Below, piece after piece: positions 13,889 to 20,106 of a stretch of 64,000 bases of DNA. Where the stretch lies: assembly GCA_021613535.1 (NCBI GenBank), contig CP075492.1, positions 14,818,001-14,882,000 on the forward strand, read 5' to 3'. The notes beneath the pieces were generated by a model. The model was given only the letters and a program-made list of their open reading frames with translations, was not told the origin of the DNA and searched no databases. The first letter of the stretch is position 1. Every line of letters begins with the position of its first letter. The stretch comes from Adineta vaga (lineage: Eukaryota > Animalia > Rotifera). The translations under genes were made by a program, and so were the position numbers.

Positions 13889-14535
13889 GTAGTGTCAAAC
13901 TCGAAAGTTGAATTCAACTATTCAACTATTCACTTCAACTATACAACTATTCAGTTATTCAGTTGTTCAGTTACTCGACTATTCAGTAATAGAGGGCGTG
14001 CGCAACAGTCAGCGTAGGCCACACTCTCTAGACTCGCAGTATATGCTGCACCATGGCACAACTATCCTTGAAAATATGTCGCACAATTTTTGTGCCCTTA
14101 TAATAAACCTCCATTAACTTTGGTGCTTTGCTAAATGTCTTTATAAAACTGGTCTCCCGTAGGAAAATGTCCTGTATTTTTAGTTTCGAGAATTTCCAAT
14201 CAAACAGTGCCCGAAATATTGATCACTCTGTTGTTTAGTGGAAATGCTTGCTATTTCATATGATGAACGCTGAGATTTACCTATATATACAATCGGTGAA
14301 TGAAAAGGAAATCTGATAATTGTATTTGTACTGATCATATCCAGCTCTTATTCTAAGATAGGAAAGTCAAATACTTTCTAGTGAGATCGTGTGATTCCTT
14401 TACGACCAACTAAATATCAGCATCGCTATCATGTTCAGCACTTTCATTATCAGCTTCACCCTCAATTCACCAATAACCCGTCACACCCTCATCATTGAAT
14501 ACATGAATACTTGAATTCAACTTTCAAGTATTACA
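13889..14535. mobile_element. Degraded MITE/hAT-like element with subterminal 8-mer repeats
   Basis: Left TAGTGTCAAACTCGAAAGTTGAATTCAACTATTCA matches the reverse complement of the right end, TATGTAATACTTGAAAGTTGAATTCAAGTATTCA. Tandem ACTATTCA/GTTATTCA units lie at ~13915-13985. Confidence 0.55.
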
Positions 14536-14894
14536 TATATATCAACTATGATTCTTCAATGTTGAATCGACTTGAACAAAAATTAAGTAGCACAGAAAAA
14601 AAACTTGATGAAAATGATATTGAAATGTGTGGTCTATGATCATTATTAACAGCAATAGCAATGGTAGTAAGATCAAGATCTGCTCATTTTTGTCAATTAC
14701 GCAAGAAGAATAAAAACATAAATAAACATACATAAAGATCAATTAGTTACATCATTTTTATCGGATAAATATGAGTTGTAGAAAAGCATAAAAATGATAG
14801 TCTACTGGAAGAAAATAATTTTATACAAATAATGTAAGAGGGTGTGGGTGTGGGTCTTTTATGCATTGTCATTCATACCAACACCCACATTCTG

Positions 14895-15080
14895 AAGATC
14901 AGCATAAGCATCTACTTGTTGCACCAACAATCTTCGTTCTTTTAGCATTACCACGTTTGATTCTATCATTTATATCAAATTGCATGACATCCAATGGAAA
15001 TGCATGGTTACCATTGACAGGCTATTTTGTTTCATCGATTCCACCAATACTTACTCTTCTCATATTTGTTGCTCGTTGGA
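14895..15080 (+). pseudogene. Fragment of a 7TM GPCR C-terminus (TM6-TM7)
   Basis: QHKHLLVAPTIFVLLALPRLILSFISNCM...WLPLTGYFVSSIPPILTLLIFV has two hydrophobic helices. No upstream TM1-5 region is visible. Confidence 0.5.
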
Positions 15081-15333
15081 AATCCGCCCGGTCTATTTGA
15101 TTGAAAGTGTCGTTAATGAAGAGATAGAGTTATATCTGATTTTTTCGCTTTTTTTACCTTGATCGTCTCTTTTTTACCGCTTTTGATTGACGACTCTATA
15201 CACGTGGCTAAATGATACTTATTGACATATAGTATCGACTCCTTTGAATATGCTTATATTGTGATTGATTGTGTTTTGTGAAGCATAAAATAAACACGAG
15301 TGAAATATCATTCTCAAAGAGTATATCAATAAG

Positions 15334-18232
15334 ATGAAGCACTCAGCTGATGTAAGGTATGGTACACAAAACCGTTCTTCAGTATCAAATCAAAGTGGAA
15401 TATTAAGGTATAGTATATCTTTGTTATTTATATTTTCATAATGATATCATATATTTGTAAGGAAAAATCAATGGATTCTGGGAATAATGATGATAGGATT
15501 GCTTATTTTAAGCCTGATCTTTCTCTCTATGTATATAAAGAAATCGAATCCAAAAAACATCGATTCAGGTAATTTTTTTGAATGTTTTATTTTTACAACC
15601 AAAAAAGAAACAATTTAATTTTTAGTACCATATTCTCTGGTAATTATTACTTATCGGAGCAATCTAACAAATACGAATTCGCGAGCAGTTACTATCACAC
15701 AATCATTGATAGATGACGTATGGTTTTGTTTATAGTTTAGATGATATCAATACGTTATTCTTGTTTTTATAGTTTATGAATGCTTTTCATTTCAAAGAAC
15801 TTCGTTTTCACTCTGCTCGCTTTAGGCCTATGTCAGAAGAAAGATCGTCAGACAAGTAAGTAAAATAACTACGTAATACTGGTAGACCATATAGCGATCG
15901 AAATTTTCATATTACAGTATCGACAAAATTCAATGTCAAGAAGATGTAGAAATAATCGGAGATTTATTTGAAATGAAATTTTCGGTCGAATATCCATCGG
16001 ATTGTCATAATATTAATTGCAAAGATGAATTCATGACTAGACTTCACTATGAAATCGCTAATCAGTATCATACAATGATTCTTTCAATGAAATTGACCAC
16101 TAATGATGTGAATAATATTTTATTAACTTTTTGTTCGTTCCATACAGATTCTACAGGTATGTAGATTATCGTTTTTCAGTATGTGAGAAAAGTGCATACT
16201 TTGTTATTCAGATAATTACAAGACTTCGGTTGATAAGAGGATGAATGGGATTACAAGAATAGTCATCGATTCATTTGAGAGTCCAACATTTGACGGAAAA
16301 ATATTTGATAATATAGGTGCCTATGAAAAGCTTCGTGGTACAGCATATGGTCAGTTAGATCCAATGAGTGACTATAATAGCATAATCACCGATTTACAAC
16401 TTGCGCCTCGTAATGCAGCTGGTATGGTGCAATATTCAATGGATTTCTATATTCTCAAACCAATAAATCAGTTTCGTGGAAACCATAAAATCTTCTTTGA
16501 AATTAATAATCGTGGTCGAAAACTATTTGGTAAATTCGCTCAAATAACAGGTGGTAACAATCCAAGGACAGAAAATGATGTTAAACGAGCGTTTTTATTA
16601 AAACAAGGTTATACGATTGTATGGAGTGGTTGGGATCCTAGTGTGTCACGAACTGATGATCCAAATTTGTTACGTATCAATTTACCGATCGCAAGAAATA
16701 TTGATGGTACATCAATAACAGGTCCCGTTTATGAATATATCGTTTTTGATAATCCAACAAGTACATTCTACACAACTTCATACAATACAAATAGTACAAA
16801 TACGAATGTAGCAACACTTTCAATGAAACATCATTTAACTGATACTCCAATCATCATTCCATCGACGAATTGGATATGGACAAGTAATAATACAATAGCT
16901 CTACTACCTTTGAATAAAACATTTCAACAAAGTTCAATTTATGAATTGACATATACAGCAAAAGATCCATATGTAGCAGGAATTGGATTTGCAGCGACTC
17001 GAGATTTTGTTTCATTTCTACGTAGTACAAGATCTGATAATCCGTTAGCAGGTGACATTACTCGAGTTATTTCTTGGAGTCAATCTCAACCAGCTCGTTA
17101 TATGAATGATTTTCTCTGGTTAGGTTTTAATAGAGATTCGACAGGAAAACGCGTATTTGATGGTGTATTTAATTGGATCGGCGCGGGCAATGGTATTGGT
17201 CTCAATTATCGTTTTGCACAATCACAACGAACCGAACATAATCGTCAAAATCATCTATATCCTGAAGCAATATTTCCATTTACTTATAAAATTCTCGCTA
17301 ATCCTTTTACTGGTAAAATAGATGGTCGAAATGCCCGATGTATGCGAACGAGAACATGTCCAAAGATTATAACTATTAATTCAGCCAATGAATATTGGGC
17401 AAAAACAGGTTCATTGTTACATTCCGATCTTGAAGGCAATGATCTACTCAGTACAACAAATGTACGATACTATCTGATTTCTGGTACACAACATAGTGAT
17501 CCATCAATGGCTAACTCACGTGGAATTTGTCAGCAGTTTGGTAATACTATTGATCCAACTCCTGTCCTGCGTGCTCTTTTCATAGCATTGAATCAATGGC
17601 TCGATGGTAGAGAGCCACCCACTAGTTTAGTACCAAATCATTTGAACGGAACTGCAACATTATCTGTGATCACTCATCATTCATCACTTGGAATCGGTAG
17701 TGTATCGCAAAGACCATTGCGTTGGCCAACTATTCCTAATGTACTCTATACAGGTTTAATTACAGTTCGTAATCTATTTAACTTTGGATCAGATCACGAC
17801 AAAGGTATTATTCATATCAATCCACCTCAGTCAACAGGCAAATATTATCCATCTTTTGTCTCAAAAGTCGATCAAGATGGTAATGAACTTGCTGGAATAC
17901 GACTTCCAACTATTTCTGTACCCGCGGCTACCTATACTGGATGGAATCATCGTCTGATGGAATATGCCGGTAATGATGGATGTGAAGCAACGGGTTCCAT
18001 CATTCCTTTTGCACCTGATCTAATCACACGAATGGCAAAAGGCGATACTCGTTTATCACTAACAGAACGTTATGGTACTCATGATAAATATGTAGCAGCT
18101 GTAGCTTTAGCTGCTACTACACTTGTCAATCAACGATTTTTACTTTCGACAGACGTTCAAGAATATATTGATACTGCAAAGTTGCCGATTCAAATTATCA
18201 ATCATCCAACTTATGGAAATTATACTTGGTAG
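15334..18232 (+). CDS. Chimeric 871-aa type II membrane protein: spliced N-terminal anchor/ectodomain plus bacterial-type alpha/beta hydrolase (Abhydrolase_10-like); 6 exons
   Basis: Exons 15334-15407, 15462-15568, 15626-15717, 15773-15855, 15918-16156 and 16212-18232 are joined by five GT-AG introns of 54-62 nt that keep one open frame. TM segment WILGIMMIGLLILSLIFLSMYI. Last-exon motifs NNRG, SGW, GFAATRDFVSFLR, SQSQPARY, EYW, GTQH and VDQDGNELAGIRLP. Confidence 0.85.
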
Positions 18233-18737
18233 TTAAATTTCAATTTACAAGAAAAACTAAACTTTATTCTCTAGATAATAAATATAAATAGAAAAACGTT
18301 TCAATGTTTATTGATGAAGTTTTTGTGATTGTATAGAGATTCTATTTAACATTGATGATTGTTTTGAGAGTGTAAGAGTGAATGCCTTGTATTTCGCTAT
18401 ACGCTCTACACCCAAACTTGACTCAATTTTTTACAGTTAAAAGCAAATCAAATTTACATAGAAGAGATACACTTCGAGATAAGAAAAGTTGGGAGGGAGA
18501 GAATGACACTTTTTCTTTGTCTTAACACGTATAATGTCTCTAGATAAATATTTTCTCGATATTAAGTGTACTATTATTATATAAAATACAGCCAATAGAT
18601 TTCAGTGGCAGTATTTTATATAATAATAGTACAGCGTTGAGACCTCATCGTCATCTTTGTCTCGAAAACGAATCTTACCGAACGTCATAAATCGTGCAAC
18701 CTGAATTCGAACTATTTGAACTCATTTAGTCACTGTA

Positions 18738-19453: not shown

Positions 19454-19909
19454 CTATTTAATAGATTTCGTAATAGAAACAATCGAATTAATATAATTTT
19501 CAGAAAATTGATGTTCTCGTGCACCATCAATAATTGTTTGAAGATATTCATTTGATGGAAGAAAATCGTTTTCTATATTTGTTTCATCAATAAATGTGAT
19601 TGCTCGAATAATTGATTGATCATTTTCAAGTTCAATATCAACTTCTATCACTCGATAACCAGGTTCTGTTTTCAATAGATACTCTCGATGTTTATTACTA
19701 ATCACATAAACTAATCCATATACATACGCGCGCTTCTTTGGTACAATATTTGCTCTTCCATCCCCATTGGGTTGCATATGATTAAAACGAAATTGATAAT
19801 CATTTAATCGACCAGCATGAATACTCAATGGGTGGTCACCACCGATTCTTTCTTCTAATAAACTTTCTTTCAAATTACTCGCATAACCAAAATAATTAAA
19901 TTGATTCAT
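19454..19909 (-). CDS. Gamma-glutamylcyclotransferase (GGCT/AIG2-like)
   Basis: Motifs YFGYASNL, GRANIVP, VYGLVY, catalytic E in KTEPGY, and PSNEYLQTIIDGAREH. Likely start MNQFNYFGY. Confidence 0.85.
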   Translation of the reverse strand: MNQFNYFGYASNLKESLLEERIGGDHPLSIHAGRLNDYQFRFNHMQPNGDGRANIVPKKRAYVYGLVYVISNKHREYLLKTEPGYRVIEVDIELENDQSIIRAITFIDETNIENDFLPSNEYLQTIIDGAREHQFSENYINSIVSITKSIK

Positions 19910-20106
19910 TTCGATATAAAAAAACGAAACGAACAACGAGTTTCTTACCGATTTGTTGACTTTAAATCTTGAATGTGATTTATCTCACAATCTTATCTGA
20001 CGAAAAGGTATGTGTATAGCAAGAAGAGCAAATAAAACGACTGCATTTTCTTCAACTAACTTTATCTTAGGAATTTGTGACAATGCATGAACAAAATCAT
20101 ATTCAT

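Follow-up and report, generated by a model that had tools for sequence, protein, structure and literature searches.

Bacterial genes that land in animal genomes do so without eukaryotic promoters, introns or targeting signals, and there are few dissected examples of how such foreign genes become working animal genes. The question is raised by a locus of the bdelloid rotifer Adineta vaga, which we studied within a stretch of 64,000 nucleotides (contig CP075492.1 of assembly GCA_021613535.1, positions 14,818,001 to 14,882,000 of the forward strand; hereafter the window, whose own numbering is used unless another contig is named). An intronless open reading frame (ORF) of 663 amino acids at 16241-18232 encodes a hydrolase of the bacterial Abhydrolase_10 family, and the original prediction, drawn from the letters of this DNA, joined it to five upstream exons. 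We conclude that the locus is probably one expressed six-exon gene in which the bacterial hydrolase sits on a transmembrane (TM) and stalk cassette of Adineta, most likely giving a type II membrane protein that would display an active hydrolase on the luminal or extracellular face. The seam between the two parts is exact, a phase-1 intron lying ten codons before the first residue that aligns to bacterial homologues; the host part goes back to a lineage-specific family of many copies; and a paralogue of the hydrolase represents a second, independent solution.

Structure and expression of the probable six-exon gene

The five-intron model was reproduced from the window: every intron runs from GT to AG, and the product of 871 amino acids consists of the ORF plus 208 residues, among them the TM helix of 22 residues, the KK that follows it and the cysteine-containing segment that had been predicted (Table 1). 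In AT-rich DNA there are many in-frame paths to the ORF, 219,030 with loose limits and 10 with introns of 50-66 nt, so that an open frame through short introns is weak evidence alone and independent evidence is needed.

Such evidence comes from assembled RNA-like contigs. The depth of run X6 falls on exons only and is zero at 14500-15500, within the introns and at 18341-18674. One X6 contig of 1314 nt joins 15717 to 15773, 15855 to 15918 and 16156 to 16212 (the last joint is found at 16153|16209, which with the cut moved by +3 becomes 16156|16212, with 236 nt on the shorter side), and its first 15 letters have a single match in the 64-kb window, at the end of exon 2 (15552). Introns 2, 3, 4 and 5 are confirmed by this spliced contig, including 16157-16211, the junction on which the original prediction laid most stress. 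The upstream exons thus splice to the ORF in one frame as had been claimed, the contig joining exons 2 to 6, and in the reproduced model all five introns do lie in the host-like part and none in the foreign part. Two additional runs, which come from two other studies, also gave contigs on the ORF and its 3' end.

The ORF is 100% identical to the public "hypothetical protein I4U23_015646 [Adineta vaga]" (P0001, 714 amino acids). This public model takes an internal Met in exon 5 as its start, so that 157 N-terminal residues are missing, namely those of the tail, of the TM helix and of half the stalk; it is truncated, and we correct it here to six exons. The start codon at 15334 and intron 1 we infer from the frame model. 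An alternative in-frame donor for intron 1 at 15357 would make the tail 17 amino acids shorter.

The same layout is found in the orthologue of Adineta ricciae (P0002), a protein of 837 amino acids that is 75% identical in the hydrolase part and has the order basic tail, TM helix, stalk and hydrolase. When its first 195 residues were searched against the A. vaga genome, residues 12-80 aligned to exons 2 and 3 (15460-15720) and residues 82-182 to exons 4 and 5 of the window, each at 51% identity. At the A. ricciae locus (L046), introns 1, 2, 3 and 5 occur at the same places, with a phase-2 intron just ahead of the basic residues that precede the TM helix, like intron 1; intron 4 is absent, residues 80-182 being encoded by one exon. 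Between the two species, the ratio of nonsynonymous to synonymous divergence (dN/dS) is 0.127 in the hydrolase (dS 1.15), 0.21 in exon 5 and approximately 0.5 in exons 3 and 4, and within A. vaga the exons have 13 listed allelic variants, of which 11 affect third codon positions (P = 2e-4) and 8 are synonymous. The conserved layout, the dN/dS values and the allelic variants therefore indicate that the fusion predates the split of the two species and is under purifying selection as one reading frame.

Table 1. Features of the hydrolase gene in window coordinates (residues in ORF numbering)
Feature	Position	Strand	Remarks
Exon 1	15334..15407	+	predicted start codon and basic cytosolic tail, from the frame model; A. 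ricciae orthologue also begins M-K
Intron 1	15408..15461	+	54 nt, GT..AG; frame model; place and phase common to A. ricciae
Exon 2	15462..15568	+	22-aa TM helix at 15472-15537, then KK at 15538-15543
Intron 2	15569..15625	+	57 nt; unaligned X6 contig end next to 15624 is the end of exon 2
Exon 3	15626..15717	+	predicted strand 1 and helix 1 of SEA-like stalk; in X6 contig; conserved in A. ricciae
Intron 3	15718..15772	+	55 nt; X6 joint 15716/15717 to 15773, one allelic letter at 15717
Exon 4	15773..15855	+	predicted stalk strand 2 and start of strand 2-strand 3 loop; in X6 contig; aligns to P0002
Intron 4	15856..15917	+	62 nt, GT..AG; X6 joint 15855|15918; in predicted strand 2-strand 3 loop; absent in A. 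ricciae
Exon 5	15918..16156	+	four-cysteine half of stalk (predicted strand 3, helix 2, strands 4-5)
Intron 5	16157..16211	+	55 nt, phase 1; seam between host module and foreign domain; X6 joint
Exon 6	16212..18232	+	10 linker codons, intronless Abhydrolase_10 hydrolase domain, stop codon
Ser282 codon	17084..17086	+	predicted nucleophile in S-x-S-Q-P-A elbow; invariant in 50 close and 22 distant sequences
Glu384 codon	17390..17392	+	likely catalytic acid; in at least 95% of 22 distant members; directly after strand 375-381
His418 codon	17492..17494	+	likely catalytic histidine; invariant; in loop after strand 408-413
AATAAA	18277..18282	+	likely poly(A) signal, read in the sequence; an X3 contig ends at 18296, 14 nt after

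A bacterial hydrolase and its likely catalytic residues

The ORF matches the Pfam profile Abhydrolase_10 (PF20091) with 146.8 bits (cut-off 23; E = 1.2e-42) over profile positions 131-428 of 429, and a scan of the whole genome for this family gave the same result for the ORF; NCBIfam returned nothing useful for it. A protein search gave 3199 matches at E <= 0.001, the best 120 of which were examined. Among these, after Adineta proteins and about ten unnamed metagenome proteins (approximately 70% identity), came bacterial proteins of about 716 amino acids that are 56-63% identical over 97-100% of the ORF, the named ones from Burkholderiaceae, Caldimonas and Noviherbaspirillum. The only named eukaryotes among the best 120 were Adineta. 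The bacterial homologues bear a lipobox (L-A-[AG]-C) and Gly-rich linkers some 20-40 residues before the first residue that aligns to the rotifer protein. In a maximum likelihood tree of the 120 sequences, made by a quick method and rooted for drawing only, the four Adineta and ten metagenome proteins form one clade (Shimodaira-Hasegawa-like approximate likelihood ratio test [SH-aLRT] support 100), which sits in a clade of 88 rows (support 100) together with three bacterial subclades. The Pfam match, the identity to bacterial proteins and the position in the tree bear out the claim that the C-terminal domain is bacterial and belongs to Abhydrolase_10. Searched separately, as the original prediction had proposed, the hydrolase part leads to bacterial best relatives and the N-terminal part to a family in which every named member comes from Adineta.

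Two of the metagenome copies reside on AT-rich, eukaryote-like contigs: L043 (35% guanine plus cytosine [GC]), which carries an ABC transporter gene in pieces, and L092 (GC 31%). Neither of the two host modules described below was found upstream of the copy on L043 (P0008). When bacterial genomes, one for each species, were scanned with a pattern, relatives at 49-55% identity turned up in Spirosoma, Larkinella, Acidobacteriota, Rokubacteria and Dehalococcoidia, and the family is thus widespread in soil bacteria. We would call the donor Burkholderiales-like with moderate confidence. The GC content at third codon positions is 0.20 in the rotifer ORF versus 0.84-0.95 in two bacterial genes. The A. 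vaga genome that we searched, a six-contig assembly of 100.8 Mb, holds exactly two copies of the hydrolase; the gene described here lies on C3, a chromosome contig of 20 Mb.

A PDB sequence search with the hydrolase found no solved relative, and its fold was modelled with AlphaFold2 from an alignment of 50 sequences (predicted local distance difference test [pLDDT] 87.6, predicted template modelling score [pTM] 0.91). Compared with known structures by VIA-align, the model gave Z scores of 12-13.7 to many alpha/beta hydrolases over approximately 225-250 residues (best Z 13.7, root-mean-square deviation 3.9, 252 residues), including acylaminoacyl peptidases, DPP4/FAP and small esterases. Foldseek against the PDB returned weak esterase matches, the best at E = 2e-4 (CE15). 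The domain is thus modelled as a generic alpha/beta hydrolase core with large insertions.

In this model, Ser282 (ORF numbering) lies between a strand at 275-281 and a helix at 283-293, the classic arrangement of a nucleophile elbow. Together with Gln283, Glu384 and His418 it is kept in at least 95% of 22 sequences that reach down to 28% identity, and the likely catalytic triad is Ser282-Glu384-His418 (Ser490, Glu592 and His626 in the numbering of the 871-residue protein). Asp396, another candidate for the catalytic acid, was rejected in favor of Glu384, since Asp396 is conserved only in the close subfamily and not in distant relatives. The original prediction had held that the elbow, read as SQSQPA, might mean altered activity. 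Only distant members of the family read G-x-S-Q-S-G, while S-x-S-Q-P-[ASTC] is the form found in the whole subfamily to which the donor-like bacteria belong (S-x-S-Q-P-[AST] in the closest bacterial homologues). Ser282, Gln283, Glu384 and His418 are invariant throughout the family. The rotifer elbow, S-Q-S-Q-P-A, is therefore inherited and differs only at the variable x, which gives no reason to expect altered chemistry, and that part of the prediction is not supported.

Four cysteines of the hydrolase are invariant across bacteria and rotifers, a pattern that would fit an exported protein in an oxidizing location. Bacterial gene neighborhoods (L044, L045) showed no conserved partners and gave no functional hint. 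The weak fold neighbors of the domain include carbohydrate esterases and S9 peptidases, and it would be guesswork to see in the enzyme an esterase or peptidase that attacks polymers from food or the environment.

The Adineta cassette and its counterpart on the paralogue

The TM segment of exon 2 is the single N-proximal hydrophobic helix of the protein, with no signal peptide ahead of it; it follows approximately 27 residues and has a mean Kyte-Doolittle value of 2.71 over 19 residues. Searches of known families gave nothing for the N-terminal part: Pfam returned only chance TM matches for residues 1-195 of P0002, 1-330 of P0009, 1-225 of P0010 and single exons (E up to 10), a word-index search with the N-terminus of P0002 matched only itself, and an ESM Atlas feature search gave an uninformative score of 0.77. 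Residues 1-195 of P0002 did, in the A. vaga genome, give weak exon-sized matches elsewhere, which when aligned share four invariant cysteines (alignment A1). A profile of this four-cysteine exon finds at least 30 places on all A. vaga chromosomes and 145 protein clusters among 1.84 billion representatives, and the named clusters that were looked up are all from A. ricciae, A. steineri or A. vaga.

Full-length members of this family align over the entire N-terminal unit (alignment A3), which consists of a variable basic tail, a TM helix ending L-I-P-[VT]-Y-L, a first half-domain, a dibasic motif of RKKR type and the four-cysteine half-domain. Nearly all the A3 members (P0131, P0136, P0168, P0174, P0261, P0265, P0188 and P0159) carry an RKKR-, KRKR- or KKRR-type motif between the two stalk halves. 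The unit is followed by various other domains. In L036 (C1:12400481-12402274; L036:2982-4775), the four-cysteine module is in one frame with a flavin amine oxidase (Pfam Amino_oxidase, E = 4e-13) and a TM exon lies just upstream; FG-GAP repeats follow the module in P0168 and P0159, and mucin-like Ser/Thr/Pro repeats in L035. Reading frames for Laminin_G_3 (L042) and CAP (L037) lie downstream of two other copies and may belong to the same genes. The view that the upstream exons are host-like is thus upheld, as they belong to a multi-copy family with named members all from Adineta that carries other ectodomains. At two copies (L005, L007), a GT donor stands right after the module exon in phase 1, as at intron 5, which is what one would expect if exons had been shuffled onto a donor site that the host already had.

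The cysteine-containing region between the TM helix and the hydrolase had been taken for a spacer; the cysteines are there, and the region is predicted to be more than a spacer, namely a folded domain. An AlphaFold2 model of residues 38-192 of P0002 (60-row alignment; pLDDT 83.7), from which the secondary structure of exons 3-5 in Table 1 is taken, shows a single domain with the order beta-alpha-beta-beta-alpha-beta-beta. Exhaustive structural comparison gave Z scores of 6-7.4 to ferredoxin-like folds, below the level that proves homology; the matches include the SEA domains of MUC16 (6.9 and 6.5), the SEA region of Gpr126 (6.9) and that of TMPRSS6 (6.3), tied with ribosomal protein S6 and ACT-type domains. 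Foldseek against the PDB found nothing for the stalk at E <= 0.001, and an Atlas fold search found generic ACT and PII folds only (template modelling score approximately 0.4). The SEA profile (Pfam PF01390) did not match the stalk, which has no GSVVV motif, and neither the A. vaga nor the A. ricciae hydrolase gene contains a furin site. In the predicted stalk, the RKKR column of the family alignment corresponds to the loop that connects strands 2 and 3, which is also where intron 4 of A. vaga is situated. We describe the stalk as SEA-like in predicted shape and in position; we do not assign it to the SEA family, since it has neither a profile match nor a GSVVV motif.

The second copy of the hydrolase in A. 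vaga (I4U23_011558; P0009, 978 amino acids) is located at C3:3131379-3134648 (L003:2880-6149); in the hydrolase part it shares 68% identity with the window ORF. The gene comprises seven exons, the last of which holds the whole hydrolase, and the last intron lies approximately 31 codons before the domain versus 10-12 in the window gene. The N-terminal module of this paralogue comprises six exons including a TM helix and has no similarity to the window module by BLASTP or hhalign. It is a member of another large family in A. vaga, for which at least 50 exon matches were found and which also precedes a subtilase (Peptidase_S8) in A. steineri (P0278) and occurs in an Abhydrolase_10 protein of 1517 amino acids in A. 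ricciae (P0277). A third copy within the same clade, P0007 (L092:856-2997, on the AT-rich Logan contig with GC 31%), has its own ATG with an in-frame stop just upstream, and a hydrophobic N-terminus resembling a signal peptide in the same exon as the hydrolase.

The simplest reading of these copies is that the gene was transferred once and then duplicated, with each copy connected to the secretory pathway independently; alternatively, one host module may have been replaced by the other. A broader idea, which we put forward tentatively and with less than even confidence, is that the two unrelated N-terminal cassettes of Adineta, the type II anchor with its SEA-like stalk and usually a furin-type site (A) and the module of the paralogue (B), are general scaffolds for ectodomain display, recruited repeatedly by exon shuffling to bring secreted enzymes of bacterial derivation into the secretory pathway of the animal. 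The same hydrolase would then have arrived independently at three ways of being exported: on cassette A, on cassette B (the paralogue at C3:3.13 Mb) and behind a plain signal peptide (P0007).

Proposed membrane topology, alternative readings and known systems

In the mechanism that we propose, the Adineta lineage would have acquired the hydrolase once from a soil bacterium, its closest named relatives being Burkholderiales, where the enzyme is predicted to be a lipoprotein. The bacterial lipoprotein signal would have been replaced, a phase-1 intron joining the mature enzyme to an N-terminal cassette from an Adineta family. The mRNA would encode, in order, a tail of approximately 27 residues, a signal anchor of 22 residues, a disulfide-bonded SEA-like stalk of approximately 130 residues, a linker of 10 residues and a Ser-Glu-His hydrolase of 660 residues. 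The TM helix would act as an uncleaved signal anchor inserted N-in/C-out, holding the enzyme on the luminal or outer face, and the cassette would thus recreate in eukaryotic terms the membrane tethering that the enzyme had in bacteria. We infer the topology, the retention in the membrane and the catalytic activity; N-in/C-out insertion is proposed because the bacterial relatives are exported lipoproteins, the cysteines of stalk and enzyme are conserved and the tail is basic, clearly so in A. ricciae. The count of N-glycosylation sequons was dropped as a clue to topology, their density being no higher than in bacterial proteins.

A product that is secreted and soluble, either through a cleaved signal peptide or through shedding of the ectodomain by a protease, is an alternative that we consider unlikely. 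The hydrophobic stretch of 22 residues after approximately 27 others is typical of a signal anchor, even though the copy P0007 of the same clade (L092) has a plain signal-peptide-like N-terminus in the hydrolase exon. Processing of the stalk is suggested by the RKKR-type loop site of most members of the host family, but this site is absent in the hydrolase genes of both A. vaga and A. ricciae; the K-R that stands just before the first hydrolase residue in A. vaga is likewise not conserved in A. ricciae. A further alternative is that the intronless ORF is an independent gene, starting from its own ATG at 16241 or from the Met of the public model, and that the upstream exons belong to another or a non-coding transcript. 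We consider this very improbable: the public annotation does begin in exon 5 (P0001) and exon 1 has no RNA coverage, but exons 2 to 6 are spliced together in the same contig and read in one open frame, and the N-terminal exons are kept in frame in A. ricciae with dN/dS of 0.2-0.5 and have all three of their listed allelic variants at third codon positions.

The absence of any transfer, the hydrolase being instead an old, vertically inherited eukaryotic gene lost in most animals or a bacterial contaminant, can hardly be maintained. Eukaryotic homologues were judged from the best 120 of 3199 matches and not from a full census, which leaves some room for vertical descent; yet Adineta are the sole named eukaryotes among those 120, and the identity of 56-63% to bacterial proteins and the grouping with bacterial sequences in the tree point the other way. 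Against contamination stand the 20-Mb contig, the splicing to host exons, the synteny in A. ricciae, the host base composition and the allelic variants. Both contamination and vertical descent are very unlikely.

Several points weigh against a membrane-displayed, active hydrolase encoded by six exons. The RNA contig reaches only the last 15-17 nt of the TM exon 2, leaving exon 1 and intron 1 uncovered, and RNA evidence in the form of assembled contigs carries no information on isoforms or expression level. The charge flanking the helix is marginal in A. vaga (approximately +3 before it versus +2 net after it, counted by eye) and clear in A. ricciae; the product might also be secreted. As the RKKR-type site is missing in both hydrolase genes, their processing may differ from that of the family. 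The donor is named from few named sequences, and Bacteroidota, Acidobacteriota and Chloroflexota also have relatives at 49-55% identity. No papers were found when the literature was searched for the name or accession of Abhydrolase_10, and no family member has a known substrate.

Among known systems, the bacterial Abhydrolase_10 lipoproteins of Burkholderiales and other soil bacteria are homologous over their full length (56-63%) and share the Ser-Gln elbow, the Glu, the His, the four cysteines and, in principle, membrane tethering. The rotifer gene differs from them in having neither lipobox nor signal peptide, and in its spliced eukaryotic exons, host base composition and two paralogues. Bdelloids are well known to carry many foreign genes, among them the DUF3494 ice-binding genes (PMC11912409), to which the present locus adds an unusually well-resolved case. 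Like them, it is an expressed bacterial gene among host genes with an intronless foreign part, and some of those genes also have secretion signals or a host anchoring exon; unlike them, it carries a five-exon cassette of TM helix and predicted folded stalk from a defined host family, and has a paralogue with a different cassette.

The proposed architecture resembles that of type II ectoenzymes with a juxtamembrane SEA domain, such as TMPRSS6 (matriptase-2) and enteropeptidase, in its short cytosolic tail, signal anchor, ferredoxin-like stalk and C-terminal hydrolase. The TMPRSS6 SEA region and the MUC16 SEA domain are among the best fold matches of the stalk, and the type II alpha/beta hydrolases DPP4 and FAP are among those of the catalytic domain. 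In contrast to these ectoenzymes, the rotifer protein has no SEA sequence relationship, no GSVVV and two likely stalk disulfides, and its catalytic domain is bacterial and not an S1 or S9 peptidase. In SEA domains, cleavage takes place in the strand 2-strand 3 loop: it is autoproteolytic in MUC1, and furin makes the cut in Notch2 and human GPR126 (PMC6954182). The RKKR-type motif of the Adineta family lies in the corresponding predicted loop, so far a predicted cleavage only, whereas the two hydrolase-bearing members lack the motif.

What appears to be new here is the corrected gene model, the SEA-like anchor family so far found in Adineta only, the inherited odd elbow and the finding that two paralogues of one foreign domain carry host cassettes unrelated to each other. 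The analysis thus defines a previously unnamed family of SEA-like domains, and the uncharacterized family Abhydrolase_10 gains a eukaryotic member that is open to expression and assay.

The hydrolase gene has neighbors of diverse kinds. On the reverse strand at 19454-19936 is an ORF of 160 amino acids for an AIG2-like gamma-glutamylcyclotransferase (Pfam AIG2_2, E = 6e-9), whose position and orientation beside the hydrolase gene are conserved in A. ricciae (L046). An intronless forward-strand ORF of 228 amino acids at 18738-19424 matches the alkylmercury lyase MerB (Pfam MerB, E = 1.2e-33), and three runs gave RNA-like contigs that cover it; at L046 in A. ricciae, the AIG2 gene follows the hydrolase gene directly with no MerB between them, and the window MerB ORF may be a separate, younger foreign gene. 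Upstream, a forward-strand open frame of 79 amino acids with hydrophobic stretches (14861-15100) ends 234 nt before the ATG at 15334; it resembles the last exon of an upstream membrane-protein gene, and one low-depth contig of run X1 lies on it.

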